Part shown: positions 1,689 to 50,594 of the stretch, in pieces
How positions within the stretch are numbered: the stretch's first letter is position 1
Layout of the letters: each line of letters begins with the position of its first letter
Origin: Haliotis rubra
Lineage: Eukaryota
Assembly: GCF_003918875.1 (NCBI RefSeq)
Contig: NW_025766514.1
Location: 868,001-932,000 of the forward strand
Direction: 5' to 3'
Length of the DNA: 64,000 bases
The notes under the pieces: model-generated
What the model was told of the DNA's origin: nothing
The model's input: only the letters and a program-made list of their open reading frames with translations
Databases searched by the model: none
Position numbers and translations under genes: made by a program

Positions 1689-2277
1689 CAGTCTAAGTAA
1701 ACTTAGGCTCAGTATTATTCGTTACACTGCTATACTGAGTCTAACAAAACCTAGTAGAAGGTCGCGTCAGCTAACCTTTTGGACTGACCAATCAAAACAC
1801 AGCTTACCAAATCGCGAAAGTTAACATTCGCACATACTGTTTGAACCTTTACCTAAAAAACCCGAACTGGAATGCTATTTTCCGCACGATCGCTTCCGAG
1901 TGATACACGCAATGAGTAAACAGTCACTGAAAATAGCGCTTTTGTCAATACTCAAGGATGTTATCTTGCGAAAATATAAGCAAATAGTAACCATGTCATT
2001 AGAAACCCATAAGCGTATATACTGCAGGTCAAATATCTGTGTTTTATGCAGATTTTCATTTGTTGATAGATCAGTGCCAACGACCAGGGAAGAGAAAATT
2101 CAAAAAACGTTTTGTAAGTCCCGCCGAACCCTAACAAGTAGTCCTTGTCTAATTGGTTAAATCCGTTCGGTCGTCTTGCGTTTGATTGGACGGTCATAGA
2201 TCGCTCAAAGGTAGCTGACGCTACCTTCTACTAGGTTTTGTTAGACTCAGTATAGCAGTGTAAGTTTACTTAGACTG
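1689..2277. mobile_element. MITE (non-autonomous DNA transposon), ~70-bp TIRs, 10-bp TSD GAGAATCTGG, in presumptive 3'UTR
   Basis: CAGTCTAAGTAAACTTA..CACTGCTATACTGAGTCTAACAAAACCTAGTAGAAGG at left is the reverse complement of 2208-2277; TSD at 1679-1688 and 2278-2287. Confidence 0.9.
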
Positions 2278-2368
2278 GAGAATCTGGAGACTTATGAGAA
2301 ACACTTCCAACACTGTGGAGAACTGTGATGTGGCAGTCATGCATGCATGCCCCGCCATTAATGAATCA

Positions 2369-2609
2369 TCAGATGCGTGTACAGTGATTGGAGGCAGTCA
2401 ATGGCTCCGTCTCCGGGGGATCATAGTCATACTTGGGGTTATAACCCAGGTCATCCATGGGGTAGCTGTGTTCCATGTAGGTCTGCATGTACGGGGGTGC
2501 AGTTGGCTCGGGGGGAGGGGGGTGGGTACGCCATTAGGGTCTCCTCATGCTCTGTATCTTCGTGTTCACGTACCCGCTCTGTGACGCCACAGCAGCACTT
2601 GGTGAAGAA
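2369..2609 (-). CDS. SLC6-like exon 14, cytoplasmic tail: FFTKCCCGVTERVREHEDTEHEETLMAYPPPPPEPTAPPYMQTYMEHSYPMDDLGYNPKYDYDPPETEPLTASNHCTRI*
   Basis: attttcag acceptor at 2610. The stated translation needs one base removed from the G6-A-G6 run at 2510-2522; stop TGA at 2371-2369. Confidence 0.8.
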
Positions 2610-2906
2610 CTGAAAATACATTGCGGAATGTCAAAACTTAGACCAGGAAACCTTAAACCCTGCGAGTGAGTCTGTGTTTTACCGATGACTTACAACTGCA
2701 GAAGGGGTGGTGGGGTACCATTATGTATTCAAAAATGTGTTCATATAATTACATCATTAACAAAAAATTACATTGACCATTTAAAAGTAATTTCATTTTT
2801 GTAGCAAGTAAGTCTCTCATGTTTGACTGTGTGTGGCCACTGGCTGTGTGTGTATGACCACTGGCTGTCCGTGTGTATGACCACTGGCTGTGTGTGTATG
2901 ACCACT

Positions 2907-2943
<37 letters not shown>

Positions 2944-5900
2944 CCACTGGCTGTGGCTGTTCGTGTGTATGACCACTGGCTGTGTGTGTATGACCACTGG
3001 TTGTGTGTGTGTGACCACTGGCTGTCCGTGTGTATGACCACTGGCTGTGTGTGTATGACATACCCCAGGTCCATGTGTGGTGAAGAGTGTGTGTAGCGCT
3101 CCCAGCAGGATGCCGATGTAAGGGAGGACAGCGATGCACCAGCTCACAATCTTCCACGGCTTGGGGAACGTGTAGTTAACCTCCTCATACATCAGATCAC
3201 GGTCATACGTCTTCAGGAACAGCGTGAACCACATGCCCTGTTGGGAGTACACAAACATATAAACCATACACCCTGTGAGGAGTACACAAACATATAAACC
3301 ATACACCCTGTGAGGAGTACACGAATATATAAACCATACACCCTGTGAGGAGTACACGAATATATAAACCATACACCCTGTGAGGAGTACACAAACATAT
3401 AAACCATACACCCTGTGAGGAGTACACATGAACATATAAACCATACACCCTGTGAGGAGTACACGAACATATAAACCATACACCCTGTGAGGAGTACACG
3501 AACATATAAACCATACACCCTGTGAGGAGTACATGAACATATTAACCATACATCCTGTGAGGAGTACACGAACATATAAACCATACACCCTGTGAGGAGT
3601 ACATGAACATATAAACCATACACCCTGTGAGGAGTACATGAACACCCATGCATCCTGTGAGGAGTACACGAACATATAAACCATACACCCTGTGAGGAGT
3701 ACATGAACATATTAACCATACATCCTGTGAGGAGTACATGAACATATAAACCATACATCCTGTGAGGAGTACACAAATTACGGATACGACTGTATGCTAC
3801 AGCTATAGGTGTGGACATGTACTCACTGCAGTAAAGAGTGCTGAGACAAATAACCACAGACCCATGATGATTCTCTCAGCCAGGGCAAAGTTCTGTTTCA
3901 CTGAAACACAAGATGAGTCTGCAGAATGCTTCACTGACTGGTGTCAGTTTTACACTGCTTCTAAAAACATCCAGAAATATCCCGGTCCCCAAATGGTATG
4001 ACAGAAAGACTTGTCTTGAATACATGAATAGGTTTTGTTTGGTACTGGTTACCAGCATTAGACATACAGTGCACCCTGGCTATAATGCCACCTTGGATAT
4101 AATGCCATTTGCCAGAATGGATTTCCTGTCTAAATAATACCCTGGTTATAATGACAAACTGGATGTAATGCCATTTGCCAATGGTTTTTGGAACGAAAGT
4201 CATTTTCAGGTTAACACATGTGACAATACACTTCCAGCCCCCTACAAGAAGTCACCTGCAGCCCCGAGACGCTGGGATTTTCCAGTCATTCAAGGCTCAT
4301 TACCGCAGACATAACCTCAGTCACCTTGTTGATTGCGTAGGGCCTCTAACTGCCTTGATTGTTAGCGTTATGAGCATACCTAGTGTGGAGTTTGGTGCTA
4401 TATAAATGGACATATTATTATTATTATTACCTGGTTATAATGCCACTCTGGATATAATGCCATATTTTCTCCTAGACAAACGGTGGCATTATAACCAGGG
4501 TATACTGTACGTGGAGTCTTGTTCAAGAACACATGCTCTCAATGTCAGATTCACATAGATTATCTCGTGTTAAAGTTAAACATCAGCACTGTCAATGATA
4601 CGTGCTAGAGTGATATACTCACCATACACAACCAGCAGGCCGAACGCCAGCAGTATAACCAGTATAAACTGAACTTTAGAGATGGACTGGTCGATGAGGA
4701 TGAAGTAGTACATGCCTGCCTGAAGAAGAAGAACACCAAGTCAGTCATGTATTACACACCTGTATCTACCGTGGTTGTCTATAGAATCCCCAATATATAT
4801 AAACGACACACATGTATCTACCTTTAGCAACACATGTATCTACCTTGGTTGTCTGTAGAATCCCCATTCCTTTAACGACACATTTATCTACCTCGGTTGG
4901 CTATAGAATCCCCATTCCTTTAGAGACACACCTCTATCTACATTTAGCGACACACCTGTATCTACCTTTAGCGATACATGTATCTACCTTGGTTGTCTGT
5001 AGAATCCCCATTCCTTTAGCAACACACCTGTATCTACCGTTAGCGACACACATGTATCTACCTTTAGCGACACACCTGTATCTACCTTTAGCGACACACA
5101 TGTATCTACCTTTAGCAACACACCTGTATCTACCTTTAGTGACACATGTATCTACCTTGGTTGTCTGTAGAATCCCCATTCCTTTAGCAACACACCTGTA
5201 TCTACAGTTAGCGACACACATGTATCTACCTTTAGCGACAGACCTGTATCTACCTTTAGTGACACATGTATCTACCTTGGTTGTCTGTAGAATCCCCATT
5301 CCTTTAACGACACATTTATCTACCTTGGTTGTCTGTAGAATCCCCATTCCTTTAGCAACACACATGTATCTACCTTTAGCGACACACCTGTATCTACCTT
5401 TAGCAACACATGTATCTATCTTGGTTGTCTGTACAATCCCCCATGCCTTTAACAACACACCTGTATCTACCTTTAGTGACACACCTGTATCTACCTTTAG
5501 CGACACACCTGTATCTACCGTTAGCGACACATGTATCTACCTTGGTTGTCTGTAGAACCCACATTCCTTTAACAATACACCTGTATCTACCGTTAGAGAC
5601 AGATGTATTTACCTCTAACAACACACCTGGATCTAACTTCAGCGACACACCTGTATCTACCGTTAGCGACACATGTATCTACCTTGGTTGTCTGTAGAAT
5701 CCCCATGCCTTTAGCGATACACATGACGACGAAGGTCATGAGCAGGTGGATGACGATCTTGCTGCAGCACTTCTTGTCTATCCACTCCTCCAAACTGTCC
5801 ATGATGTTGTCCACGATAGTCAATGAGCCCACCACCTGGGCACAGATATGTAACAACATCTCCGAACACTGCACACTGGAAATGGCTTCAAGTTTCCCGA

Positions 5901-8900
5901 ATATCAAAATGGTATTTTGTGTACCTAGAATTTGCTTTGACATTAGAGATTAACTCACTAACACATCTAATAACTTTCAAAATCAATGCAGGCCTGAATG
6001 TGATGGTGAAACGCTTGGCCACTTTAACAGTTACACAAGAAATGGGCTTCACACGTTGTACCCATGGGAGAATCGAACCCAGGACTTCGTTGTGATGAGC
6101 AAACGCTTTACCCACTAGGCTACCCCACCTCCCCTGTCACCCCTGTAACAAACAACAGGAAATAAACACGTATATGTATCTGATCACTACAGCACAGCTT
6201 AAGGTATATGTATCCGATCACTACAGCACAGCTTAACGTATATGTATCCGATCACTACAGCACAGCTTAACTCAAGACATCGGGTTAGTTACTGTTTTCC
6301 ATTAAATGTCCTTCATATTAAGCATCCATTTGTAATTGTGTCAGATTGTCCTGAAATTATTTATAGCTTGGTCACATTTCGCCAACTCACCAAGAACATG
6401 AGACCGAAGAGGAATGCAGACAGGAGGAAGAGGAAAGCGTAGATGGGTGGAATGTTGAGCACGGTGAACGCTGCCGGCATCTGCCACAGCACCAACCCTG
6501 GACCCACTTGATCTGAAACACACAAACACACACTAGGATAAACACAGCTCAGAAATTATGGAATTCAGAACCAACTGTGCCAGAACTCAGAACCATCTTA
6601 GTCTGTATAATGGAACTCACAACTTACTCTGCATGCTGAACTTGGTATGCTGGAACTTAACACTTACTCCGCATGCCAGGACTCAGAACTTACTCCGCAT
6701 GCCAGGACTCAGAACTTACTCCGCATGCCAGGACTCAGAACTTACTCTGCATGCCAGGACTCAGAACTTACTCCGCATGCCAGGACTCAGAACTTACTCT
6801 GCATGCCAGGACTCAGAACTTACTCCACATGCCAGGACTCAGAACTTACTCTGCATGCCAGGACTCAGAACTTACTGCTGTTTGCCAGACTCAGAACTTA
6901 CTCTGCATGCCAGGACTCTGCTGTTTGAAGATCATGTCACCTAGGTACGGCGCCATAGCGATTGGAGGGAGCTGGCTGCAGAGTGCGTAGACACCAATCA
7001 TAAGAACCCAAGTGCTGCAAAGGAAGAAAGAGGTGTTGTACACTTGAGCATCATCAGAGTTGACAGGCTACGATGCTGTGTTGTCTCCTCCTTGAACTGA
7101 TGGCACTATATAATGGTACTTACATGACGGTACTACATGACGGTACTGGTATATGAGGGTACTATATGATGGTACTGCTATATGAGGGTACTATATGATG
7201 GTACTCACATGTTTCGTATTGACCTCCCCTTGCCACACATCTTGCCCATGGTTGCAGCGATGATGGTCCACACCGGCAGCGAGTTCATTACCACCAGCAG
7301 GGACTGATGCCAGCTCTGTAGGGGAACACATACATCATAGCTCATATGTTTACGGAGAATTAATTACATCCAACAGAACCTGGTGTGTATAAATACATGA
7401 GGGAATGTATTCTTGGATGTTGGCATGGAGTATATGTACATGTAAAGCACTGTACTCTGGGATGTAGGCATTTTGTATACGTACACATAAAGAACTGTAT
7501 TCTGGGATGTAGGCATGGTGTATACGTACACATAAAGAACTGTATTCTGGGATGTAGGCATGGTGTATATGTACATGTAAAGCACTGTATTCTGGGATGT
7601 AGGCATGGTGTATACGTACATGTAAAGAACTGTATTCTGGGATGTAGGCATGGTGTATATGTACATGTAAAGCACTGTACTCTGGGATGTAGGCATGGTG
7701 TATACGTACACGTAAAGCACTGTATTCTGGGATGTAGGCATGGTGTATATGTACATGTAAAGCACTGTATTCTGGGATGTAGGCATGGTGTACATGTACA
7801 TGTAAAGCACTGTATTATGGGATGTAGGCATGGTGTATATGTACATGTAAAGCACTGTATTCTGGGATGTAGGCATGGTGTATATGTACATGTAAAGCAC
7901 TGTATTCTGGGATGTAGGCATGGTGTATAACGCATACATGTAAGCACTGTATTCTGGGATGTAGGCATGGTGTATATGTACATGTAAAGCACTGTATTAT
8001 GGGATGTAGGCATGGTGTATACGTACATGTAAAGCACTGTATTATGGGATGTAGGCATGGTGTATATGTACATGTAAAGCACTGTATTCTGGGATGTAGG
8101 CATGGTGTATACGTACATGTAAAGCACTGTATTCTGGGATGTAGGCATGGTGTATATGTACACGTAAAGCACTGTATTCTGGGATGTTGGCATGGTGTAT
8201 ACGTACACGTAAGGAACTGTATTCTGGGATGTTGGCATGGTGTATATGTACATGTAAAGCACTGTATTCTGGGATGTAGGCATGGTGTATACGTACACGT
8301 AAAGCACTGTATTCGGAGTTGTAGGAGTACACTTGCTTGAGGTAGGCGAGGGCAGCGGAGCGGTCAAGGTGGGTGTAACCGTAGCCCAGCACAGCCAACA
8401 GACAGGACAGAGCAGCTGGACCCATCACAAACAACACCTGCAAACGAAGGCAGAAACGTGATGCGTCTTGACAAGGTACACTGCACTACATTGACAGAAA
8501 CTTTGGCAGCCATTGGGTCCTCCTCCATAATTGTTGCTATGGTATTTTAACTGAAGTAATTTCTTTAACCCTTTCATAACTTTTATGGTTAAAACAAGAA
8601 CTCGATCTTGATGTACATACTTAACATTGTACGTTCAGGTTTTTCCAATTTCCAAAGGTCAAAGACCTCTGTTTGTTTTTTACATATTTAACAAATAAAA
8701 GCAAAACAATATGCTGAATTTACTCAAGATTCTGTTGATATACATCAGATAATATCCAATAGAAATGATTTAAATATTATTCAATTCCTTCTTTGTGAGG
8801 CCCAGTTAAATCTGATATCAGCACTGTAGAGAGGGAAAATGTAAGCTCCCATGAAGGTGAAAGGCACTAAAGTGAGTATCTACCCATCCACAGAAGCGTC

Positions 8901-11900
8901 CCCCCGAAGCCAACGAGGAGGAAGATGATGACCCACACAATGGCTAACGTCACCGGCATCAGTGAGACCTCCGCCTTCCGCGCAATCTCCGTGAACTTCC
9001 ATTGAGGAAACCCATCCATGGAATCCACACCAGTGGAGAGCTGCAGAAACTCGTGTCTGTAAGTAAATACAATACTCTCATCATAGGGGCAAGCAAATAC
9101 TGTACTCTCATACTTTCAACTGCTTAATAATAACACAATCTGTGCAATTAAAGCACTAACATTACTACCCTGGTCACTGGGTCAGTGTATACCTCCACCC
9201 CAGCTGCCTGTGAGGCACGAGAAGGTTAATGGTTACATGACCATCCCATCCCACCGGGTACTAGTGTTGGGAATTGGTTTCAATCTCATAATGTTGATTG
9301 CTTCATTACAACTGATCAATCATCGAAAATAATTGCATTATTTATGAAATTTTCCAGGTTCTTTTTTTTTGTTAATGCAAAAAAACATAATGAAAAAAAC
9401 ATGTAGTTCTTTGGGTTTTTTGTGTGGCAAATTTCACATCTTGAAAGGATGACTAGTATGTTAGGAACAAAAGTCTTCCTGGAGTCTTTAAGATAAATTC
9501 AATCATGCCTTGGAACAAGCTTGTAGTCGTTATGAAATGTAACTTACAAAACCAAACTTGTGAAAAATATTGTTAATGCAAAAAGTGTTCCAGAATTGTT
9601 TGTGTTCGATTATGAGAAAACATGATCGATTGCTTGGTCGTTTAGTCACTGTGACCTATCTTCGATTTTTTCAATTAATCGGACCACCACTACCGGGTAC
9701 CCATTCACTGCATGGTAAACAGAGACAATTTTGAACAAAGTCACTGGCCTAGAGTACAACCACATGTGTTACATGTACTTTGTTGTGGGGAAGGACTGAA
9801 GTCCAAGACACTCTCAGGAATCAAGCTGCCAAACACGGTCACCCATCAAAGGATTCCCTGCAACCAACTCTGCTTCACTTCCACTGATTTACGATACATG
9901 TGCTCTTTGCACAAATCCAAACAACACCACTGTCTCTGAGTGACTGATGAATAAGATATGTGTTAGCTCTCTAAGAGTGAGTGAGAGAGTGAGTATGGTT
10001 TAACGCTGCTTTTAGCAATATTCCAGCAATATCGCAGTGGAGGGCACCAGAAATGGGCCAGCTCTCTAAGAGTGAGTGAGTGAGTTATTATTTAACGTCA
10101 CATCGGCAATATTGCAGCCATATCGTGACGAGAACATATTTGATTTTGAAGTGGAATATATGTATAATATAAACCTGTCAACGAAGGACAGTAAAACAAC
10201 TAGAATATCACAATTAGCTCTCTAAGAAGTATTTGAACAAAGCACCAACTGTCAAGATGAAGTCAATGTAGCATGCGGGTGACAGCTGACCAATTTAACC
10301 CCCTTTGGTAATGTAAAACATCTCTGACTTACCTGTAAAACAGCTCCTCAGCTCTTCGGTAGGATTTCATGTTGTTCAAAATTCTACAACAGAAAAGTGC
10401 ATTCTTGACAGTGTCAGACAATAGAGGAGGTTCAAGCCCTATCTACCACACCAAAATGACAAAAATATAAAGGATAAAAATCTTTCAAGAAACTCATTCG
10501 ACCTGTTCATTCAACTTTAAAACTTTCCATTCCATGACAACACTGACTGACCGAGTATGGTTTTTAGCGGCTTTTAGCAATATTCCAGCAATATCACGGC
10601 GGGGACACCAGAAATGGGCTTCACACATTGTACCCATGTGGGGAAAGGAACCCGGGTCTTCGGCATGATGAGCGAACACTTTAACCATTAGGCTACCCCA
10701 CCGCCCCTACTAGTGACAGTGACTCAGTTCAGTGCTACATGGTGTCCCAGAGTTGGACTGACATTCATTCAGTAAGCCTTGGATCTGCATAGGTAAACGT
10801 CTAACTGATTTTTTCAACAAGCTTCAAATGACCGTTGCCAACAGACAATTTGTTGTAGTTGTATTTGTGTCTGTTACCATGGTTACTTACTTCACTTCTG
10901 AAAAGCCATCATAGCAGAAGGGCTGGTCCACTATAGCCTTACAGTTGCCCCACACATATGGCTGCTCGGAGATGGCGATGAAGGCGTAGGTGCCGAACTG
11001 GGCCACGATGGGGGCAAGGTTGGTGAGTCTCAGCAGCAAGTCTATCACAGCCACAACACCAACACCTGTAACAATAATTATAATAATAATAATGATAGCT
11101 TATTTGTATTACGCTTTTTCCATACTTGGATATTATGCTCAAAGCGCAGTGAGGATTGATCCTGTAACACGGATATAGAGGGACTAGACATGGCAGACAT
11201 GATAGCCACTTACAAGTGTAAAAGTGCGCACAGCTCGCATACCCCCGCTTCCCACTGTGGGACTTGGAGGTGAGGTGAAATAGGGTTTAACGTCGTACTT
11301 GAGAATGTTTCGCTCATATGACTTAAGCTGGTTTAATAGTGCTAGCCCACAGAGATACCATGCCACAGTGAAGCATGAATACCCCACTCAGACACATTAT
11401 ACTGACTCCAAGCCGACCAGTCCTTGTTGTACCCATGTTGAACTGATTCATGCCGAGCGCCAGGCAGGAGCCAACAAGCACCATATTTGAACGTCTTTTG
11501 GTATGACACGGACGGGGATCGACCCCGTGACCTTCTCCGGGCGGATGCTCTAACCACTACACCACCGAGGTGGTCTTGGGACATGGACATGACTGATATT
11601 GATATATACAATTGGTACATATGACATGAAGAAAGACAATGAAAAGTGAAAAGTTAACATCACACTTTGAATAATCACATTTTGCAAAAAGAAATCGCAC
11701 AAGGCACATCTGTTGGTCATGATTAACTTGTGTGTTAAGTTTGGTGAACCTAACATGTATAGTTTCAGTGCTCCGGACAAGACAACCATCAAACACATTT
11801 TGCACTATGTCGTGTTTCTATGGAAACAGAAAAAAAAAAATTCTGATAAACTTCAACTTAGCAAAAGCCACATCTGTGAGTGTTGACTAACATATGTATG

Positions 11901-13484
11901 GAGTTTGGTGAATCCAGTAAGTAAACTTTAAGAGATATGCACCAGACAAAGTTTCGAGACAGAAGGAAGGACGGAAAGAACGTTATATACCCCCATTACT
12001 TTGTAAGCGGGGTATAATAATAAAATCTGTAGAAAACTTTAAGAATATAGCTACTTATGATTTAACAAGTACCTTCCCTGATAAGCTTTCATCTGTATTG
12101 ACACACTAGCGTCCACGTGGATAGACTTACCCTTCCAGATAGGGAAGAACATAGAGAATATACCCACGATGCCCTTCTGTAGGTAGCCACCCAGCTTGAG
12201 CTGGATATACAGGGCCGGGGTGCAGATGAAGAATGTCAGGAGGTACAGCGCGATCACCGACATCCCCCCTGAAACATCAGTACATAGTGTAGAGTGAGTG
12301 AGTGGGTTTCAGTTACAAATAGTTCCCAAATATAAGTACCTTGGAATGTTCATGACAAGTAAGCTAACATGGATTTCAACTCATTCACAACTTTCACAGC
12401 AAGAGAGAAAAGTAACTTTCGGATTGATAAGGTTCATCATAACTTGACATTACCAGATCATTACTGTTATTTGACAGGATCACTGTACCAATACTAGAAC
12501 ATATGGATCAGAGATTTAAGGGTTTCAAGTATGAAGAACACATCGAGAAGATTCATCATCAGTTTTGCAAACAGATGTTGGGAGTTGGAAGAAAACGAGT
12601 AACACAGCTGTTCTAGGTGAACATGGATGATGTCACACTTGCTTGATAACGGTGTTAGCATCTACACCGAAATGTCGGTGACTATCCATAGTACTTGGTT
12701 TTCCTTCATCTTTACAACTTCTAAAATGCCTCTCAAAGAAGTATTGTATATAAAAAAACGTATCAAGCTTTGGTTGAAAGTACTGCATATGCCAGACGAC
12801 AGACACTCGAAACAGAGCGAGTTCTACTGCTGCTTTGAACGGTATTCCAATTATAACGCAGTATGTCAGCCTTACTGTCTAGGAAAGCCTGGGGTGATAC
12901 AGGCTTCAAATGTTCACCACTCAGGTTCAGCCCACAAGGAAAGGTATGGCGTAGACAAACATGAGTAGAACAAACTGGGATTTGGATCCACAAAATTTGA
13001 TTTTGACATGCATGAGAGAGACGAACTCACCTCAGATATTTGTTGCACCTCAGACCTCTATTATGACGTCATGAATGTCTACAGTTAAGATGCGCAGATT
13101 GATGCTCATGCTGTTGATCAGTGGATTGTCTGATCCATACTCGATTATTTACAAACCACCGCCATATAGCTGGAATATTGCTGTGTGGCATAAAACTAAA
13201 CTCACTCACTCACTCCCTACAGTTAAGAATTCTAAGGATTGTGACACGGTAAGCATGACATTAGCGTATACAAGTAACTTGAAAAATACGTAGTGAAACT
13301 TTACAGGACACTCTCTACATAAATGTTCACCAAATTTTCTCCCTGAAATATGTCGACACGCTTGCTGCAAATGTACGACCTGATCACGTGACTTACCCTC
13401 CGGCGGCCTCATGAAGGACAGGTAGCAGGTGAACAGCGATATGAAGATGAACTGCATGGGGTTCCAAGGGGCTATCTCTCCCAT
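2369..13484 (-). CDS. Atypical SLC6/NSS (SNF-family) 12-TM transporter-like gene, 14 coding exons, ~614 aa: 13484-13397, 12268-12131, 11065-10891, 10383-10333, 9056-8884, 8437-8297, 7315-7209, 7014-6902, 6512-6391, 5835-5683, 4719-4623, 3900-3827, 3237-3064, 2609-2369
   Basis: Hand-spliced, all GT-AG, phases chain 1,1,2,2,0,0,2,1,0,0,1,0,0. SLC6 landmarks are in the right order: LKLGGY...FPIWKGVG (TM2-TM3), PYVWGNC...FC (EL2 cysteines), AEELFYR..LQLSTG, GPGLVLWQMP (EL4), AGMYY (TM10), YTFPKPWKIVSW (TM12). Needs removal of one base at 8900-8905 and one at 2510-2522. Confidence 0.9.
2826..3060. repeat. Minisatellite (GACCACTGGCTGTGTGTGTAT, 21-25 bp) with embedded (TG)n, starting at the exon 13 donor
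   Basis: direct inspection. Confidence 0.9.
3064..3237 (-). CDS. SLC6-like exon 13: GMWFTLFLKTYDRDLMYEEVNYTFPKPWKIVSWCIAVLPYIGILLGALHTLFTTHGPG (TM11-TM12)
   Basis: cccaacag acceptor, gtatgt donor, 174 nt phase 0-0; Y..YxFPxW..GW-like motif. Confidence 0.9.
3238..3775. repeat. 35-bp minisatellite (~15 copies) duplicating the exon 13 splice acceptor
   Basis: minus-strand unit ...gtactcctcacag|GGTGTATGG versus real ...gtactcccaacag|GGCATGTGG. Confidence 0.92.
3827..3900 (-). CDS. SLC6-like exon 12: KQNFALAERIIMGLWLFVSALFTA (first half of TM11)
   Basis: tgtttcag acceptor, gtgagt donor, 74 nt phase 1-0. Confidence 0.85.
4067..4507 (+). mobile_element. Non-autonomous pogo/Tigger (Tc1-mariner superfamily) element with a DDE_1 remnant; contains a short LINE-type 3' end with (ATT)n tail at ~4352-4429
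   Basis: TA|CAGTGCACCCTGG...CCAGGGTATACTG|TA; remnant VTIHFQPPTRSHLQPRDAGIFQSFKAHYRR resembles Tigger FLPPNTTSxLQPxDxGII..FKxxYR; second copy at 48276. Confidence 0.88.
4623..4719 (-). CDS. SLC6-like exon 11: AGMYYFILIDQSISKVQFILVILLAFGLLVVY-V (TM10)
   Basis: ttcttcttcag acceptor, G|gtgagt donor, 97 nt phase 0-1; matches GGMYxFxLxD...xYG. Confidence 0.92.
4755..5722. repeat. Compound minisatellite (24-bp and ~50-bp units) duplicating the 3' end and donor of exon 10
   Basis: repeated minus-strand GCTAAAGGAATGGGGATTCTACAGACAACCAAG|gtagatac, nearly identical to the exon end (AKGMGILQTTK). Confidence 0.92.
5683..5835 (-). CDS. SLC6-like exon 10: VVGSLTIVDNIMDSLEEWIDKKCCSKIVIHLLMTFVVMCIAKGMGILQTTK (end of TM8, TM9)
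   Basis: gcccag acceptor, AAG|gtagat donor, 153 nt phase 0-0. Confidence 0.88.
6038..6134 (-). mobile_element. tRNA-derived SINE family A, partial
   Basis: A box TAGCCTAGTGG and B box GGTTCGATTC on the minus strand; ~13 copies in window. Confidence 0.85.
6391..6512 (-). CDS. SLC6-like exon 9: QVGPGLVLWQMPAAFTVLNIPPIYAFLFLLSAFLFGLMFL (EL4, TM8)
   Basis: tgtttcag acceptor, gtgagt donor, 122 nt phase 1-0; GPGL motif. Confidence 0.92.
6620..6918. repeat. 26-bp minisatellite (~11 copies) duplicating the exon 8 donor
   Basis: minus-strand unit GAGTCCTGGCATGCRGA|gtaagttct. Confidence 0.92.
6902..7014 (-). CDS. SLC6-like exon 8: TWVLMIGVYALCSQLPPIAMAPYLGDMIFKQQSPGMQ-N (TM7)
   Basis: ttcctttgcag acceptor, A|gtaagt donor, 113 nt phase 2-1. 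Confidence 0.88.
7209..7315 (-). CDS. SLC6-like exon 7: SWHQSLLVVMNSLPVWTIIAATMGKMCGKGRSIRN-I (TM6)
   Basis: cccctacag acceptor, gtgagt donor, 107 nt phase 0-2; positional equivalent of VWxDAATQIFFSLG...YNxxxNNCYR. Confidence 0.88.
7385..8315. repeat. 45-bp minisatellite (~20 copies) duplicating the exon 6 3' end and donor
   Basis: minus-strand unit AATACAGTGCTTTACRT|gtacrtatacaccatgcctacatcccag. Confidence 0.93.
8297..8437 (-). CDS. SLC6-like exon 6: VLFVMGPAALSCLLAVLGYGYTHLDRSAALAYLKQVYSYNSEYSALR (TM5, EL3)
   Basis: tttgcag acceptor, CGT|gtacgt donor, 141 nt phase 0-0; the donor lies in the first unit of the 45-bp array. Confidence 0.82.
8884..9056 (-). CDS. SLC6-like exon 5: HEFLQLSTGVDSMDGFPQWKFTEIARKAEVSLMPVTLAIVWVIIFLLVGFG(GRFCGW) (TM4)
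   Basis: ttacag acceptor, gtagat donor; 173 nt as given, 172 needed, so one extra base in the C6 run at 8900-8905. Confidence 0.85.
9140..9935 (-). mobile_element. 5S-rRNA-derived (SINE3-type) retroposon with CORE-like centre, interrupted by a hAT MITE
   Basis: minus strand 9894-9836 TCGTAAATCAGTGGAAGTGAAGCA-(25 nt)-TGGGTGACCG matches 5S box A/box C spacing; body homologous to 13805-14080. Confidence 0.65.
9262..9692. mobile_element. hAT-type MITE, 8-bp TSD CCGGGTAC
   Basis: TAGTGTTGG...CCACCACTA termini; TSD at 9254-9261 and 9693-9700. Confidence 0.85.
10333..10383 (-). CDS. SLC6-like exon 4 (51 nt): K-ILNNMKSYRRAEELFY-R (EL2)
   Basis: ttgtag acceptor, AG|gtaagt donor, phase 2-2; AEELFYR resembles SLC6 PxEEFWxR. 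Confidence 0.85.
10545..10707 (-). mobile_element. tRNA-derived SINE family A, full length
   Basis: GGGGCGGTGGGGTAGCC head, GCTGGAATATTGCTAAAAGC tail. Confidence 0.9.
10891..11065 (-). CDS. SLC6-like exon 3: VGVVAVIDLLLRLTNLAPIVAQFGTYAFIAISEQPYVWGNCKAIVDQPFCYDGFSEV (TM3, start of EL2)
   Basis: ttacag acceptor, gtaagt donor, 175 nt phase 1-2; W-x-x-C...C of EL2. Confidence 0.9.
11069..11160 (-). mobile_element. 5'-truncated LINE/SINE 3' end (L2/CR1-like stem-loop plus (ATT)n tail) abutting the exon 3 acceptor
   Basis: GCGCTTTGAGCAT...AAAAGCGTAATACAAAT...(ATT)n. Confidence 0.6.
11265..11576 (-). mobile_element. tRNA-derived SINE with a Meta/MESC (RUDI-like) central domain
   Basis: GGTGTAGTGGTTAGAGC A box, GGGTCGATCCCC B box, then GTCATACCAAAAGAC..AAATATGGTGCTTG..CCTGCCTGGCGCTCGGCAT..CAGTATAATGTGTCTGAGTGG. 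Confidence 0.75.
11620..12018 (+). mobile_element. Helentron-associated non-autonomous element (HINE/DINE-1-like)
   Basis: two internal subrepeats containing AGTTTGGTGAA, GACAGAAGGAAGGACGG microsatellite, 3' hairpin ATACCCCC..GCGGGGTAT. Confidence 0.7.
12131..12268 (-). CDS. SLC6-like exon 2: GMSVIALYLLTFFICTPALYIQLKLGGYLQKGIVGIFSMFFPIWK-G (TM2)
   Basis: tgtttcag acceptor, G|gtaagt donor, 138 nt phase 1-1; matches SLC6 GGGAFLIPY...ELALGQ...PLFKG. Confidence 0.92.
12305..12830 (+). pseudogene. Decayed non-LTR retrotransposon reverse-transcriptase C-terminal fragment
   Basis: LQIVPKYKYLGMFMTSKLTW ... YGSEI ... IEKIHHQFCKQMLGV ... TAVLGEHG with frameshifts. Confidence 0.7.
13085..13215 (+). 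mobile_element. SINE family B, 3' fragment
   Basis: GATGCTCATGCTGTTGATCA..CCGCCATATAGCTGGAATATTGCT..AACTCACTCACTC. Confidence 0.85.
13397..13484 (-). CDS. SLC6-like exon 1 (coding part): MGEIAPWNPMQFIFISLFTCYLSFMRPPE-G; degenerate TM1
   Basis: ATG at 13484, in-frame TGA upstream at 13508-13506, donor G|gtaagt; likely acceptor tttcttccag at 13601 makes 13600-13485 5'UTR. Confidence 0.78.
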
Positions 13485-13804
13485 GATGCTGGCTGGTTGG
13501 TCTTGTCAATCACTTGCAGTATCCAATCAAAGTGTTCGTAAAGACTCCACCCAGAAGTGTAACTGTACTGTCAATGTCATGAACAAACCATGGTTGAGAT
13601 CTGGAAGAAAGTTTCAAATAATTGATAAATGTATGTACTGGTTTACGTTCTTGTAAATATTTGTCATTGCGCCAGATACAGGGTGACGCAGTCGCCCTCT
13701 GCTTTTGGCCACCCTCAGGAATATGGGTGAAAAAAATAATTTTATCAGCAGATGACACCTGAAACAAATCAACTCCAGTCAACAGCATGTGTAAGTAATT
13801 ATAT

Positions 13805-17414: not shown

Positions 17415-20400
17415 AGTCTCCAGGAATCTCTATCATGTTGTAAGGGGCAGATGGGGAACTGGGTGACAGTCCAGGAATCTCTACATGTTGTAAGGGGCAG
17501 ATAGGGAGAGGGTGACAGTCCAGGAATCTCTACATGTTGTAAGGGGCAGATAGGGAGAGGGTGACAGTCCAGGAATCTCTACATGTTGTAAGGGGCAGAT
17601 GGGGAACTGGGTGACAGTCCAGGAATCTCTACATGTTGTAAGGGGCAGATAGGGAGAGGGTGACAGTCCAGGAATCTCTACATGTTGTAAGGGGCAGATA
17701 GGGAGAGGGTGACAGTCCAGGAATCTCTACATGTTGTAAGGGGGCAGATGGGGGGAACTGGTGACAGTCCAGGAATCTCTACATGTTGTAAGGGGCAGAT
17801 AGGAAGGTGACAGTCCAGGAATCTCTACATGTTGTAAGGGGCAGATAGGGAGAGGGTGACAGTCCAGGAATCTCTACATGTTGTAAGGGGCAGATAGGGA
17901 GAGGGTGACAGTCCAGGAATCTCTACATGTTGTAAGGGGCAGATAGGGAGAGGGTGACAGTCCAGGAATCTCTACATGTTGTAAGGGGCAGATAGGGAGA
18001 GGGTGACAGTCCAGGAATCTCTACATGTTGTAAGGGGCAGATAGGAGAGGGTGACAGTCCAGGAATCTCTACATGTTGTAAGGGGGAGCAGATGGGGAAC
18101 TGGGTGACAGTCCAGGAATCTCTACATGTTGTAAGGGGCAGATAGGGAACTGGGTGACAGTCCAGGAATCTCTACATGTTGTAAGGGGCAGATGGGGAAC
18201 TGGGTGACAGTCCAGGAATCTCTACATGTTGTAAGGGGCAGATAGGGAGAGGGGTGACAGTCCAGGAATCTCTACATGTTGTAAAGGGGCAGATAGGGAG
18301 AGGGTGACAGTCCAGGAATCTCTACATGTTGTAAGGGGCAGATAGGGAGAGGGGTGACAGTCCAGGAATCTCTACATGTTGTAAGGGGCAGATGGGGAAC
18401 TGGGTGACAGTCCAGGAATCTCTACATGTTGTAAGGGGCAGATAGGGAGAGGGTGACAGTCCAGGAATCTCTACATGTTGTAAGGGGCAGATAGGGAGAG
18501 GGTGACAGTCCAGGAATCTCTACATGTTGTAAGGGGCAGATAGGGAGAGGGTGACAGTCCAGGAATCTCTACATGTTGTAAGGGGCAGATGGGGAACTGG
18601 GTGACAGTCCAGGAATCTCTACATGTTGTAAGGGGCAGATAGGGAGAGGGTGACAGTCCAGGAATCTCTACATGTTGTAAGGGGCAGATAGGGAGAGATG
18701 GGGAACTGACAGTCCAGGAATCTCTACATGTTGTAAGGGGCAGATAGGGAGAGGGGTGACAGTCCAGGAATCTCTACATGTTGTAAGGGGCAGATAGGGA
18801 GAGGGTGACAGTCCAGGAATCTCTACATGTTGTAAGGGGCAGATGGGGAGAGGGTGACAGTCCAGGAATCTCTACATGTTGTAAGGGGGAGGGTGACAGT
18901 CAGATGTTGGGGGCAGATAGGGAGAGGGTGACAGTCCAGGAATCTCTACATGTTGTAAGGGGCAGATAGGGAGAGGGTGACAGTCCAGGAATCTCTACAT
19001 GTTGTAAAGGGGCAGATAGGGGAACTGGGTGACAGTCCAGGAATCTCTACATGTTGTAAGGGGCAGATAGGGAGAGGGTGACAGTCCAGGAATCTCTACA
19101 TGTTGTAAGGGGCAGATGGGGAACTGGGTGACAGTCCAGGAATCTCTACATGTTGTAAGGGGCAGATAGGGAGAGGGTGACAGTCCAGGAATCTCTACAT
19201 GTTGTAAGATAGGGAGAGGGTGACAGTCAGGATCTCTACATGGGCAGTCCAGGAATCTCTACATGTTGGAAGGGCAGATAGGGAGAGGGTGACAGTCCAG
19301 GAATCTCTACATGTTGTAAGGGGCAGATAGGGAGAGGGTGACAGTCCAGGAATCTCTACATGTTGTAAGGGGCAGATAGGGAGAGGGTGACAGTCCAGGA
19401 ATCTCTACATGTTGTAAGGGCAGATAGATAGGGTGACAGTCCAGGGACAGTCCAGGAATCTCTACATGTTGTAAGGGGCAGATAGGGAGAGGGGTGACAG
19501 TCCAGGAATCTCTACATGTTGTAAGGGGCAGATAGGGAGAGGGTGACAGTCCAGGAATCTCTACATGTTGTAAGGGGCAGATAGGGAGAGGGTGACAGTC
19601 CAGGAATCTCTACATGTTGTAAGGGGCAGATAGGGAGAGGGTGACAGTCCAGGAATCTCTACATGTTGTAAGGGGCAGATAGGGAGAGGGGTGACAGTCC
19701 AGGAATCTCTACATGTTGTAAGGGGCAGATAGGGAGAGGGTGACAGTCCAGGAATCTCTACATGTTGTAAGGGGCAGATAGGGAGAGGGGTGACAGTCCA
19801 GGAATCTCTACATGTTGTAAGGGGCAGATAGGGAGAGGTGACAGTCCAGGAATCTCTACATGTTGTAAGGGGCAGATAGGGAGAGGGTGACAGTCCAGGA
19901 ATCTCTACATGTTGTAAGGGGCAGATAGGGAGGGGTGACAGTCCAGAATCTCTACATGTTGTAAGGGGCAGATGGGAACTGGGTGACAGTCAGGAATCTC
20001 TACATGTTGTAAGGGGCAGATAGGGAGAGGGTGACAGTCCAGGAATCTCTGCATGTTGTAAGGGGCAGATAGGGAGAGGGTGACAGTCCAGGAATCTCTA
20101 CATGTTGTAAGGGGCAGATAGGGAGAGGGTGACAGTCCAGGAATCTCTACATGTTGTAAGAAGGATAGCAGATGGGGAACTGGGTGACAGTCCAGGAATC
20201 TCTACATGTTGTAAGGGGCAGATAGGAGAGGTGACAGTCCAGGAATCTCTACATGTTGTAAGGGGCAGATAGGGAGAGGGTGACAGTCCAGGAATCTCTA
20301 CATGTTGTAAGGGGCAGATAGGGAGAGGGTGACAGTCCAGGAATCTCTACATGTTGTAAGGGGCAGATAGGGAGAGGGTGACAGTCCAGGAATCTCTACA

Positions 20401-21107
20401 TGTTGTAAGGGGCAGATAGGGAGAGGGTGACAGTCCAGGAATCTCTACATGTTGTAAAGTTACATGTTGTAAGGGGCAGATAGGAGAGGGTGGGGAGACT
20501 GACAGTCCAGGAATCTCTACATGTTGTAAGGGGCAGATAGGGAGAGGGTGACAGTCCAGGAATCTCTACATGTTGTAAAGGGGGCAGATAGGGAGAGGGT
20601 GACAGTCCAGGAATCTCTACATGTTGTAAGGGGCAGATAGGGAGAGGGTGACAGTCCAGGAATCTCTACATGTTGTAAGGGGGCAGATAGGAGAGGGTGA
20701 CAGTCCAGGAATCTCTACATGTTGTAAGGGGTAAGCAGATAGGGAAGGGTGACAGTCCAGGAATCTCTACATGTTGTAAGGGGGCAGATAGGAGAGAGGG
20801 TGACAGTCCAGGAATCTCTACATGTTGTAAGGGGCAGATAGGGAGAGGGTGACAGTCCAGGAATCTCTACATGTTGTAAGGGGCAGATAGGGAGAGGGTG
20901 ACAGTCCAGGAATCTCTACATGTTGTAAGGGGCAGATAGGGAGAGGGTGACAGTCCAGGAATCTCTACATGTTGTAAGGACAGGAATCTCAGATAGGGAC
21001 AGGGTGACAGTCCAAGAATCTCTACATGTTGTAAGGGGCAGATAGGGAGAGGGTGACAGTCCAGGAATCTTTACATGTTGTAAGGGGCAGATAGAGAGTG
21101 GGTGACA
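17415..21107. repeat. 49-50-bp minisatellite, ~3.7 kb (GGGTGACAGTCCAGGAATCTCTACATGTTGTAAGGGGCAGATAGGGAGA)
   Basis: direct; two interspersed unit variants. Confidence 0.97.
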
Positions 21108-30587: not shown

Positions 30588-31818
30588 TGAATCAACAAAC
30601 TCAGTCTCCTATTACACAGTCTCCCCCCATGTCTGAATCAACAAACTCAGTCTCTGATTACACAGTCTCCCCCATGTCTGAATCAACAAACTCAGTCTCT
30701 GATTACACAGTCTCCCCCCATGTCTGAATCAACAAACTCAGTCTCCTATTACAGTCTACCCCCATGTCTGAATCAACAAACTCAGTCTCTGATTACACAG
30801 TCTCCCCATGTCTGAATCAACAAACTCAGTCTCCTATTACAGTCTACCCCCATGTCTGAATCAACAAACTCAGTCTCTGATTACACAGTCTCCCCCCATG
30901 TCTGAATCAACAAACTCAGTCTCTGATTACACAGTCTCCCCCCATGTCTGAATCAACAAACTCAGTCTCTGATTACACAGTCTCCCCCCATGTCTGAATC
31001 AACAAACTCAGTCTCTGATTACACAGTCTCCCCCCATGTCTGAATCAACAAACTCAGTCTCTGATTACACAGTCTCCCCCCATGTCTGAATCAACAAACT
31101 CAGTCTCTGATTACACAGTCTCCCCCCATGTCTGAATCAACAAACTCAGTCTCCTATTACAGTCTACCCCCATGTCTGAATCAACAAACTCAGTCTCTGA
31201 TTACACAGTCTCCCCCCATGTCTGAATCAACAAACTCAGTCTCTGATTACACAGTCTCCCCCCATGTCTGAATCAACAAACTCAGTCTCTGATTACACAG
31301 TCTCCCCATGTCTGAATCAACAAACTCAGTCTCCTATTACACAGTCTCCCCATGTCTGAATCAACAAACTCAGTCTCTGATTACACAGTCTCCCCCCATG
31401 TCTGAATCAACAAACTCAGTCTCTGATTACACAGTCTCCCCCCATGTCTGAATCAACAAACTCAGTCTCTGATTACACAGTCTCCCCCCATGTCTGAATC
31501 AACAAACTCAGTCTCCTATTACAGTCTACCCCCATGTCTGAATCAACAAACTCAGTCTCTGATTACACAGTCTCCCCCGAAGTCTGAATCAACAAACTCA
31601 GTCTCTGATTACACAGTCTCCCCCCATGTCTGAATCAACAAACTCAGTCTCTGATTACACAGTCTCCCCCCATGTCTGAATCAACAAACTCAGTCTCTGA
31701 TTACACAGTCTCCCCCCATGTCTGAATCAACAAACTCAGTCTCTGATTACACAGTCTCCCCCCATGTCTGAATCAACAAACTCAGTCTCTGATTACACAG
31801 TCTCCCCCCATGTCTGAG
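30588..31818. repeat. 46-bp minisatellite (TGAATCAACAAACTCAGTCTCTGATTACACAGTCTCCCCCCATGTC)
   Basis: direct. Confidence 0.97.
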
Positions 31819-50130: not shown

Positions 50131-50594
50131 AACACGATGGTTTGTCAAGTAACACATATTGTAATGGAGTGTTGACAAGACTTAGTATATCCCTTACATC
50201 TATACAAGGCTGCCATCCTCGATCAATGCAGATACAATCGTGTCCTGTATATAGATGTGCTACTGGTGATGTGGCCGCCAGGGGGTATCAATGTTTGTCA
50301 ATGAAGGACTCTCAATTTGAGTCTCCACAAGCACCATTTAATTAAATGAGCTGCAATCCATCCTGGCTGGACTCCATCAACTTTACATTCATACATCTCG
50401 TATTCCCCACCATCAACATTCAATTGAATGTACTGTGATTGTGTTGAAATTGGAGGCCCAGCAGTAGACGGACCCCGGAGGCTATATGCACAGGCACTGA
50501 ATAACCAACTTTGTATATGTCGATGTTATCATGTTCATGTCAACTTCTAATCAGAAACAAAATCTGAAAAGCACTTTACCATATCAGGGGGATA

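Follow-up and report, generated by a model that had tools for sequence, protein, structure and literature searches.

A mollusc-restricted branch of the SLC6 family with replaced ion-binding residues in the abalone Haliotis rubra

The abalone gene described here (14 exons, minus strand, 13600 to about 2255 of the window, i.e., of the whole 64,000-nucleotide stretch of Haliotis rubra DNA that was analysed) encodes an SLC6-like protein. It raises the question of what such a protein does when the residues that usually hold Na+, Cl- and the substrate have been replaced. The best explanation of the whole, to which we give a probability of roughly 0.55, is a mollusc-restricted SLC6 branch that has lost its ion sites, with a function as transceptor or adaptor being favoured.

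Gene structure and transcription

The 614-codon frame of the window matches, exon by exon and with 96% identity, a Haliotis rufescens protein named "sodium-dependent proline transporter-like" in RefSeq (P0036). The 14 exons rebuild P0036 exactly at the H. rufescens own locus, with ag/gt at all intron ends. Spliced mRNA contigs of 2470 and 2417 bases from two public runs (X1 and X2) join the segments 13603-13396, 12267-12129, 11041-10891, 9056-8901 and 8438-8300 and support the first six exons and the start codon; from their lengths, they should end near 2257 and 2272. The gene is real, expressed and correctly spliced, and the limits of the coding sequence (13484 and 2369) had been set correctly in the preliminary description.

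The start-codon exon includes a part of the 5'UTR (13485..13600) and is preceded by the acceptor ttcttcCAG at 13601-13603, up to which the mRNA contigs of both runs were matched; a further ~393 bases of 5'UTR in the mRNA are located upstream of 14299. Between 13600 and 13484, upstream of the ATG, each of the three frames contains stops, the mRNA contigs have no room for an upstream coding exon, and all 31 orthologues begin alike. An alternative first exon with the canonical GNxWRFP, which the preliminary description had considered, is absent.

The coding part of exon 1 (13397..13484, donor GG/gtaagt) covers Met1-Glu29 and the first base of codon 30, i.e., the entire short N-terminus and TM1. 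Exon 2 (12131..12268) encodes GG, TM2 and the beginning of the TM2-TM3 loop, and it alone matches the Pfam SNF profile when the window exons are scanned one by one (16 bits, E 0.005). TM3 (LRLTNLAP) and the beginning of EL2 with its Cys pair are encoded by exon 3 (10891..11065), which is followed by a 51-base micro-exon in EL2 (10333..10383, ILNNMKSYRRAEELFYR). The latter is based on 51 otherwise unplaced bases of the mRNA record and on the depth of X1 and X2 in the bin 10300-10499, which equals contig depth x 51/200; 10333-10383 has the strongest splice sites of all in-frame 51-base candidates, and the same micro-exon is found in H. rufescens. Exon 4 (8884..9056, containing the G run 8900-8905) encodes the end of EL2 and TM4, and exon 5 (8297..8437; mRNA match 8438-8300) TM5 and the start of EL3, its 3' end being the first unit of a 45-base tandem array. 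The open reading frame 8879-8825 (ILTLVPF...) was rejected as an exon, TM5 being coded at 8437-8297.

Exon 6 (7209..7315, boundary set by the orthologue) encodes TM6 with VVMNSLPVWT and the loop GKMCGKGRSIRN, and exon 7 (6902..7014) TM7 (TWVLMIGVYALCSQLPP) and EL4a; the string "TSFFLCS" upstream of 7014 was rejected as coding, since it results from translating the polypyrimidine tract of the intron. VGPGL, EL4b and TM8 follow in exon 8 (6391..6512), the last residues of which are GLMFL, and the end of TM8 (TIVDNIMD) and TM9 in exon 9 (5683..5835), whose donor is present in many copies within the tandem array 4804-5722. TM10 (AGMYYFILIDQS) is encoded by exon 10 (4623..4719), the KQNFALAER loop and the first part of TM11 by exon 11 (3827..3900), and the end of TM11, EL6 and TM12 by exon 12 (3064..3237), the acceptor of which is the final unit of the 35-base array 3236-3774. 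The last exon begins at 2609; its coding part (exon 13, 2369..2609, stop 2371-2369) encodes the cytosolic tail with CCCG, EPTAPPY, YPMDD, DPPETEPL and the C-terminal TRI, and its 3'UTR (2255..2368) contains the poly(A) signal variant AGTAAA at 2270-2265.

A single-copy branch of the SLC6 family in gastropods and bivalves

Within the SLC6/NSS family, the abalone protein falls into an orphan branch that is single-copy and restricted to molluscs. Roughly 45 members turned up, the named ones all coming from gastropods or bivalves; the orthologue group is single-copy and so far confined to gastropods and bivalves, and a search for a paralogue in the window's own genome found none. P0036 and the gastropod and bivalve orthologues represent the same gene, with no change in the 14-exon structure or the divergent motifs; there is no difference in kind, and the window copy has two extra single bases (see below). 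The gene tree tracks the species tree, the branch to a canonical SLC6 measures ~10 changes per site, and the identity to canonical SLC6 proteins is 16-21%. The preliminary description had suggested an undescribed lophotrochozoan SLC6 subfamily. The subfamily is indeed distinct and conserved, but "lophotrochozoan" is too wide, because all named members are gastropod or bivalve. The clade is without description in the literature searched; the proteins are already present in RefSeq and UniProt under automatic names, which are mutually inconsistent (proline, GABA-2, betaine, taurine, glycine-1, B0AT1, ine).

With a curated cut-off of 27 bits, the Pfam SNF profile (PF00209) scores 102.3 bits for the Solemya orthologue, 45.8 for Plakobranchus and 27.3 for a Mya fragment, and P0036 is annotated with PF00209 in precomputed tables. 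The closest solved relatives are GAT3, TauT, PROT, GlyT1 and DAT. The AlphaFold model of the 96%-identical orthologue (pTM 0.84; made from 31 sequences only, and possibly imposing the family fold) has twelve membrane helices, the same number as the hydrophobic segments noted earlier, and superposes on the Drosophila dopamine transporter (dDAT 4xph) with Z 36.9 and an rmsd of 2.9 Å over 506 residues; Foldseek gave E 1.8e-17 and TM 0.81. According to this model, the 12-helix LeuT/SLC6 fold is kept. The model places 8 residues before the first helix, in line with the unusually short N-terminus described before. The EL2 Cys pair, VGPGL and AGMYY were all found in the spliced frame. The EL2 disulfide pair (W-G-N-C...F-C in exon 3; C126 in at least 90% of members), the TM6 break, the TM2 tyrosine and the TM10 aspartate are retained.

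The clade possesses motifs of its own: W-N at the start, SLPxWT in TM6, TIVDN, and EP[TS]APPY in the tail. W7, N8, P269, W271, I274, D378, N379 and P570-x-A572-P573-P574 are invariant in 31/31 orthologues, and Y575 is present in 30/31. The cytosolic tail combines a P[TS]AP + PPY motif with an acidic DPPExEPL and a C-terminal [ST]-x-[IM] PDZ-type ligand. Note that APPY is not the textbook PPxY. The gene is under strong purifying selection, with dN/dS of 0.042 versus H. rufescens (dS 0.516, dN 0.022).

Replacement of the ion and substrate sites

In canonical SLC6 proteins, Na1 is built from an Asn in TM1, a Ser/Thr in TM6 and an Asn in TM7, and Na2 involves G-L-D/T-S in TM8; the Cl- site of the eukaryotic members consists of a Tyr (TM2), Gln and Ser (TM6) and a Ser (TM7). 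Their TM1 contains the unwound segment G-x-x-x-G-L-G-N-x-W-R-F-P, which provides Na1, Na2 and substrate backbone contacts. The divergent strings quoted in the preliminary description were all recovered in the spliced minus-strand frame: TM1 as FIFISLFTCYLSFMRPPEGG (spanning exons 13484-13397 and 12268-12131), TM3 as LRLTNLAP without the YY pair, TM6 as VVMNSLPVW, TM7 as GVYALCSQL and TM8 as GLMFL. Chance does not account for the missing canonical motifs, as the replacements recur in conserved form throughout 31 orthologues.

The sites were mapped by profile alignments to GAT3 and TauT and by column counts over these 31 orthologues, which supports the earlier claim that the residues forming Na1, Na2, the Cl- site and the S1 portion in TM1 are missing. 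The Asp-Ser of Na2 in TM8 is replaced by M367 (30/31) and F368 (28/31), the Na1 Asn of TM7 by Y300 (26/31), the chloride Gln of TM6 by V263 (Leu in 25/31) and the TM2 Glu by Q52 (30/31). Position 304, which belongs to the Cl- site in TM7, is variable (V10, S8, C7). The TM6 Ser of the Na1/Cl site is kept as S267 in 19/31, and the TM2 Tyr of the Cl- site as Y38 in 25/31.

For TM1 (positions 1-29), no alignment was obtained with hmmscan, hmmsearch or hhalign: positions 1-36 of the SNF profile were never matched, and the hmmsearch and hhalign alignments begin at the GG before TM2. The TM1 sequence WNPMQFIFISLFTCYLSFMRPPEGG is a helix without Gly or Asn, modelled as a single helix of residues 9-25, and between the conserved Trp and the GG it is 9 residues shorter than the canonical one. 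The canonical TM1 Asn could not be placed (S23 is the nearest candidate), and the mapping of this TM1 onto the canonical TM1 is uncertain; bivalve members possess a central Pro in TM1, at which the helix might still be broken. Bulky hydrophobic residues have taken the place of those that bind Na+, Cl- and the substrate backbone; from the residue types, the pocket appears to be filled. We consider it very probable that the abalone protein cannot act as a Na+/Cl--coupled symporter.

Possible functions and known systems

Because the Na+/Cl- sites are lost and the clade shares a gene under strong selection, its role is probably a different one from ordinary uptake driven by sodium. The loss of the coupling sites, together with the tail motifs EP[TS]APPY, DPPExEPL and [ST]-x-[IM], hints indirectly at a transceptor or adaptor recruiting trafficking and scaffold partners instead of a concentrative carrier, and we tentatively put this forward. 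The SLC6 fold would be retained as a ligand- or conformation-sensing module with its output going through the conserved cytosolic tail, where P[TS]AP + PPY, DPPExEPL and [ST]-x-[IM] may recruit the partners. On the other hand, PDZ ligands and motifs for trafficking also occur in the tails of canonical SLC6 carriers. It is conceivable, though more speculative, that the SLC6-fold protein common to gastropods and bivalves gave up transport several hundred million years ago and has since served as a receptor or adaptor in the membrane. In that case, the former substrate and ion cavity, now packed and hydrophobic, would together with the rigid TM1 form a sensing or structural module, and the invariant tail with P[TS]AP-PPY and the PDZ ligand would provide the link to ESCRT, ubiquitin ligases and scaffolds. 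If true, this would be the first conserved "pseudo-transporter" clade in the SLC6 family.

Nearly as likely as a transceptor or adaptor is an ion-uncoupled carrier that would alternate between outward and inward states and move a neutral or hydrophobic solute downhill or by exchange, without Na+ or Cl-. ApcT, AdiC, CaiT and LAT1 function with a LeuT fold without Na+, so losing the ion sites need not end transport. In favour of a carrier, the predicted fold persists with its TM6 break, and the two residues of the extracellular gate are conserved in most members (R26 in 22/31, D430 in 27/31), together with AG-x-YY in TM10. The preservation of S267, Y38, D430 and mostly R26 is in keeping with transporter-like gating, which counts against the transceptor view. 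Furthermore, conservation is highest in the segments of TM3, TM6 and TM8 that line the pocket, positions 91, 266 and 267 within the pocket vary between lineages, as substrate sites often do, and dN/dS is 0.04. Against such a carrier stand the shortened, Gly-free TM1 and its single modelled helix; to our knowledge, TM1 is unwound and rich in Gly in all characterised LeuT-fold carriers, whether coupled or not. The protein also lacks the N-terminal gate arginine, and among its buried residues no conserved Lys or Arg is evident that could replace Na2, as such a residue does in ApcT and CaiT.

The two extra bases of the window, which the preliminary description had missed, are located in homopolymer runs: one in the G run 8900-8905 (six G, one more than in the mRNA contigs and H. 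rufescens) and one extra C at 2524-2526. Taken literally, the first insertion alone shifts the frame of the spliced window, leading to a stop after 231 codons, and neither insertion is present in H. rufescens. If real, they would make the gene a transcribed pseudogene or null allele, with a product that ends after TM4 in this animal or one haplotype. This is improbable: conspecific mRNA contigs of both runs have five G instead of six at the first site (inferred from 15 unplaced bases by a counting that is exact at two other junctions, and applying to 8900-8905 only), every splice site is intact, and dN/dS is equally low along the gene (0.032 before, 0.054 between and 0 after the two sites). 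As the mRNA lacks the first extra base, both are probably homopolymer errors of the assembly; with an overall dN/dS of 0.04 instead of the ~1 of neutral evolution, the gene is not a decaying pseudogene.

An ordinary Na+/Cl--dependent amino-acid, osmolyte or GABA transporter, as suggested by the RefSeq and UniProt names, by the SNF scores above the cut-off in orthologues and by the best solved relatives (GAT3, TauT, PROT, GlyT1, DAT), appears close to refuted, as the names disagree between species, the identity to any canonical member is 16-21%, Na2 is Met-Phe, the TM7 Asn is Tyr, the Cl- Gln is Val/Leu, and GxxxGLGNxWRFP is absent from TM1.

The Na+-independent APC carriers ApcT, AdiC, CaiT and LAT1, which form separate families, share with the mollusc protein the LeuT fold, which in them works without Na+. 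In contrast to it, they keep an unwound, Gly-containing TM1, and several have a Lys or Arg at Na2. Yeast Ssy1, human SGLT3/SLC5A4 and SLC38A9 are non-transporting or sensor members of carrier families. They too have a carrier fold under selection, in their case for signalling, a role that we propose tentatively for the mollusc protein. [quoted passage not shown] With Ssy1, SGLT3/SLC5A4, SLC38A9 and SNF-10, the mollusc protein has no sequence relation past the superfamily. From the SLC6/NSS carriers (dDAT, human SERT, NET, GAT3, TauT, GlyT1, PROT) it differs in lacking the N-terminal tail and GLGNxWRFP, in its unalignable TM1 that is 9 residues shorter, and in the TM8 Met-Phe, TM7 Tyr, TM6 Val/Leu and TM2 Gln. 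It resembles them in the 12-helix LeuT fold of the model, the TM6 break, the EL2 disulfide, the TM2 Tyr, the TM6 Ser, the G-x-Y and gate Asp of TM10, the EL4/TM8 framework P-x-A...L-x-I-P...Y-A-x-L-F, and the PDZ-type C-terminus.

Relatives, tree and selection

The first relatives of the SLC6-like gene on the minus strand (614-codon frame, 13484-2369) were obtained by using its 57-residue TM3 exon as the query of an exhaustive HMMER search. Among the eight proteins returned, those of Plakobranchus (gastropod) and Solemya (bivalve) are full-length and that of Mya is a fragment. Two proteins of the exhaustive search (P0001 and P0007) were rejected as relatives; they are RCC1-like repeat proteins whose similarity is to the Gly/Val-rich start of the query. 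Word searches, first with the Solemya protein and then with an alignment of the family, brought the membership to ~45 proteins (E 1e-105 to 0). All named members are from gastropods (Haliotis, Patella, Littorina, Pomacea, Batillaria, Nucella, Biomphalaria, Physella, Bulinus, Plakobranchus) or bivalves (Solemya, Mytilus, Ostrea, Saccostrea, Magallana, Pinctada, Ylistrum, Mercenaria, Ruditapes, Mactra, Mya), and the first match outside the family is a canonical fish transporter (E 1e-5, 21% identity). The orthologues are already present in RefSeq and UniProt under automatic names that vary by species (proline, GABA-2, betaine, taurine, glycine-1, B0AT1, ine); note that at least seven different, misleading transporter names are attached to them in public databases.

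In a maximum likelihood tree of 35 members and one canonical outgroup, the gene tree matches the species tree across gastropods and bivalves. Support is 100/99 for the gastropods and 100/100 for the window's protein together with that of H. rufescens; heterobranchs, caenogastropods, mytilids, oysters and imparidentian clams form separate clades, and the branch to the canonical outgroup measures ~10 changes per site. Searches with the exons of the gene found no paralogue in the window's own genome. The family is a group of single-copy orthologues that dates back at least to the divergence of gastropods and bivalves. P0040, a 599-aa protein from a Logan assembly, sits beside the gastropods with a branch as long as 1.8 changes per site; its source may be a further class of molluscs, and in that case it would help to date the clade.

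The preliminary description had left room for a decaying pseudogene with dN/dS near 1. Between the window and H. rufescens, dN/dS is 0.042 (dS 0.516, dN 0.022; 156.5 synonymous and 30.5 non-synonymous differences); the gene is strongly constrained and not decaying, and the 25 amino-acid differences, polarised on other gastropods, are split evenly between the two lineages.

In the exon-by-exon Pfam scan, the TM2 exon alone matches SNF (PF00209), and weakly (16 bits, E 0.005). A PF00209 search of the animal's own 1.38-Gb genome gave no SNF match at the gene's own locus among the scored matches, and the gene is therefore far from the family profile. The same search gave more than 150 exon-level SNF matches elsewhere in this genome. 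Many of them, spread over many contigs, span only profile positions 280-370; as sequence matches, they suggest that this abalone genome has a large SLC6 expansion or many fragments.

Fold, lost sites and possible function

A structure was predicted with AlphaFold from the family alignment, with the H. rufescens orthologue P0036 in the first row; this protein, 96% identical to the window's frame, stands in for the window protein and supplies the residue numbering used here. The predicted model (mean pLDDT 79.9, pTM 0.84) has twelve membrane helices, with TM6 broken at residue 267 and the last 70 residues disordered. Foldseek matches it to the Drosophila dopamine transporter (dDAT; E 1.8e-17, TM 0.81), and VIA-align superposes residues 1-548 on dDAT chain 25-599 with Z 36.9 and an rmsd of 2.9 Å over 506 residues. 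At the level of the predicted model, the SLC6 fold proposed in the preliminary description is thus borne out.

TM1 is short and unrecognisable. The model has in its place a single predicted 17-residue helix (9-25) with eight residues ahead of it, which agrees with the short N-terminus noticed before. In the alignment of the family profile with GAT3 and TauT (E 7e-21), the matched part starts at the GG ahead of TM2 and runs through TM12, and hhalign against a canonical sequence begins at the same GG; therefore the first 29 residues have no detectable likeness to canonical TM1. The Pfam SNF match is limited to profile positions 37-519. From the conserved Trp to the GG there are 25 residues in the clade vs 34 in dDAT (counted by hand on the known dDAT sequence), and the centre of the TM1 helix reads V-Y-P-A-Y in bivalves and F-T-C-Y in Haliotis.

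The sites were mapped by profile alignment to GAT3 and TauT and by column counts among 31 orthologues; the functions of the canonical residues are known from the structures of LeuT, dDAT and GAT1. At the Na2 site, the Asp and Ser of TM8 correspond to M367 (30/31) and F368 (28/31). The TM7 Asn of the Na1 site is Y300 in 26 of the 31, and the TM6 Ser shared by the Na1 and Cl- sites corresponds to S267 (19/31). As to the Cl- site, its TM2 Tyr corresponds to Y38 (25/31), its TM6 Gln to V263 (Leu in 25/31), and its TM7 Ser to the variable position 304. The Tyr-Tyr pair of the substrate site in TM3 is T90-N91 in Haliotis, with Tyr at position 91 in 21/31, and the buried Glu of TM2 is Q52 in all orthologues except one (30/31). 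The G-x-G of the unwound region of TM6 is P269-V-W271, with P269 and W271 both invariant. The Asp of the extracellular gate in TM10 is D430 in 27 orthologues, and 22 have R26 at the outer end of TM1. Judged from these aligned columns, the side chains holding Na1, Na2 and Cl- are gone in the clade, and the earlier claim that their motifs are missing holds for TM1, Na1, Na2 and the Cl- site alike. A Na+/Cl--coupled symport would very probably be impossible for such a protein.

The clade has invariant features of its own: W7-N8, S-L-P-x-W-T-A-I in TM6, T-I-V-D-N after TM8, and Y452, F457 and E461 in the loop after TM10. Furthermore, the tail is conserved; it contains E-P-[TS]-A-P-P-Y, then Y-P-M-D-D and D-P-P-E-x-E-P-L, and ends in [ST]-x-[IM]. 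We take P[TS]AP to be the classic TSG101 ligand motif; PPY presumably resembles NEDD4 WW ligands, and the C-terminal [ST]-x-[IM] is assumed to be a class I PDZ ligand. N-myristoylation of the Met-Gly start was considered and rejected (the Gly is followed by Glu, and only 16/31 members have Gly2).

We prefer to read the protein as a sensor or adaptor, with a probability of roughly 0.45, a reading that stands close to that of a carrier. The SLC6 fold would have been retained as a module, either rigid or ligand-sensing, and partners would be recruited through the conserved tail. We favour this reading because every active LeuT-fold carrier that we know of, coupled or not, has an unwound TM1, because the bulky hydrophobics (Met, Phe, Tyr, Trp) at the ion sites would fill the cavity, and because the N-terminal gate segment is missing. 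An uncoupled facilitator or exchanger is nearly as probable, as the TM6 break and the gate pair are kept, the pocket-lining segments are very highly conserved, and lineage-specific changes occur at the pocket positions 91, 266 and 267.

Transcripts, reading frame and repeats

The gene is real and expressed. Two small public RNA runs of one study (X1 and X2) gave mRNA contigs of 2470 and 2417 bases, pieces of which match the window in mRNA order at 13603-13396, 12267-12129, 11041-10891, 9056-8901 and 8438-8300 with 0-3 differences each. The junctions 13397/12268 and 12131/11065 are canonical gt/ag and base-exact, if chance matches of 1-2 letters are allowed. Between 10891 and 9056, 51 mRNA bases are left without placement, and the depth of X1 and X2 in the bin 10300-10499 equals the contig depth times 51/200. 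Among the in-frame 51-base candidates, the micro-exon at 10383-10333 (minus strand) has the strongest splice sites (tgttgtag ahead of it, gtaagt behind it). Two other runs (X5 and X6) have reads over exons and introns alike with 2-3% differences, and are therefore DNA from another animal.

The first 393 bases of the mRNA record map upstream of the stretch covered, so there is at least one further 5' exon. It adds no coding sequence, since each of the three frames is closed by a stop between 13600 and the ATG at 13484; an alternative first exon carrying GNxWRFP, which the preliminary description had allowed for, therefore does not exist. P0036 (614 aa) matches the gene model almost perfectly, and four exon boundaries were corrected from it. 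Mapped onto the H. rufescens locus, the 14 window exons yield P0036 exactly, with ag and gt at all intron ends. The model also agrees with the lengths of the mRNA contigs, whose predicted 3' ends (~2257 and ~2272) lie at a poly(A) signal variant (AGTAAA, 2270-2265). The strings quoted in the preliminary description are found in stop-to-stop open segments of the minus strand. Several candidates were discarded: the ORF 8879-8825 (ILTLVPF) as TM5, absent from the mRNA contig; the acceptor 7042 with VYNTSFFLCS, a weak site in what is the polypyrimidine tract of the true acceptor 7014; and the donors 7224 and 6941 and last-exon acceptors 2506 and 2482, all ruled out by the orthologue alignment.

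Relative to H. rufescens, a single base is inserted in exon 4 of the window (8900-8905, six G; GGCTTCGGGGGGACGC vs GGCTTTGGAGGACGC) and another in exon 13 (2524-2526; TACCCACC vs TATCACC), the latter identified from the H. rufescens orthologue only; the literal spliced sequence reaches a stop after 231 codons. Alignment with H. rufescens locates the exon 4 problem in the G run and not at the donor GGG (8883-8885). The mRNA contigs break at 8901 after five G and leave 15 unplaced bases before the next exon, where six G would leave 16. Since this kind of count comes out exactly at two other junctions, the mRNA carries five G and reads GGRFCGW, the conserved frame. A true null allele is improbable: these conspecific contigs contradict the first extra base, both sites are homopolymer runs (of G and of C), and dN/dS is equally low before, between and after them (0.032, 0.054 and 0). 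The two extra bases are probably assembly errors. If so, other genes of this assembly may likewise look like pseudogenes, and homopolymer frame breaks in a conserved gene matter for pseudogene calling here.

The window's DNA is eukaryotic, and the introns of the gene are long and full of tandem arrays. Minisatellites abut exon ends at 3236-3774, 4804-5722, 6662-6918 and 7406-8325. Together with a fifth at 2828-3059 (periods of 21-48 bases, 3-32 copies in TRF), they begin or end exactly at exon boundaries of the gene and hold copies of the exon end with its splice site. Extra copies of the ends of exons 5 and 9 are present in the H. rufescens locus, too (L035, 14020-14081 and 19001-19031). The summed depth of four intronic stretches (9900-10100, 10500-10700, 11300-11500, 13100-13300) is huge in each of the four runs, reaching 1e5 for RNA and 1e7 for DNA, and there are opposite-strand joints between 10571 and 13186. 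These stretches are copies of one abundant short interspersed repeat, two of them inverted within the gene's introns. Beyond the gene, a 3.7-kb array of a 49-base unit (17419-21107; ~73 copies with 84-94% matches over three adjacent TRF blocks) explains the G-rich, GC-skewed block of the composition profile. At least nine more large minisatellite arrays, with periods of 25-170 bases and 0.9-1.5 kb each, lie in 24532-63226 (e.g., 30588-31817, 48925-50156, 55719-57118), and minisatellite content is unusually rich across the whole window.

Comparison with known SLC6 proteins

To our knowledge, substrate uptake is Na+-coupled in every SLC6 protein characterised so far. Among Na+-coupled LeuT-fold carriers, no feature is regarded as more universal than the Na2 site. 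A specialist would not expect an SLC6 clade that has been conserved for so long to lack both the Na2 site and a broken TM1, although coupling has been lost elsewhere in the wider superfamily. The clade is a natural experiment on what the SLC6 fold does without ion coupling, at dN/dS 0.04. Since farmed oysters, mussels and abalone have the gene, and in single copy, it also lends itself to a clean test of the reuse of carrier folds as sensors or adaptors. In the literature searched, no paper was found that describes the clade or the loss of its sites. An unnamed 'sodium neurotransmitter symporter' is up-regulated during shell repair in a bivalve mantle study (PMC8382897); no link between it and the clade was found.

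By profile and fold, the clade belongs to SLC6/NSS, but it lacks the working features of this family in TM1, Na1, Na2 and the Cl- site. Its nearest solved relatives (GAT3, TauT, PROT, GlyT1, DAT and SERT) are all equally distant from it, and therefore no SLC6 subfamily name can be assigned. The nearest published idea is SNF-10 of C. elegans, an SLC6 protein required for protease-triggered sperm activation, with unknown cargo, for which a review assumes import (PMC10136096).
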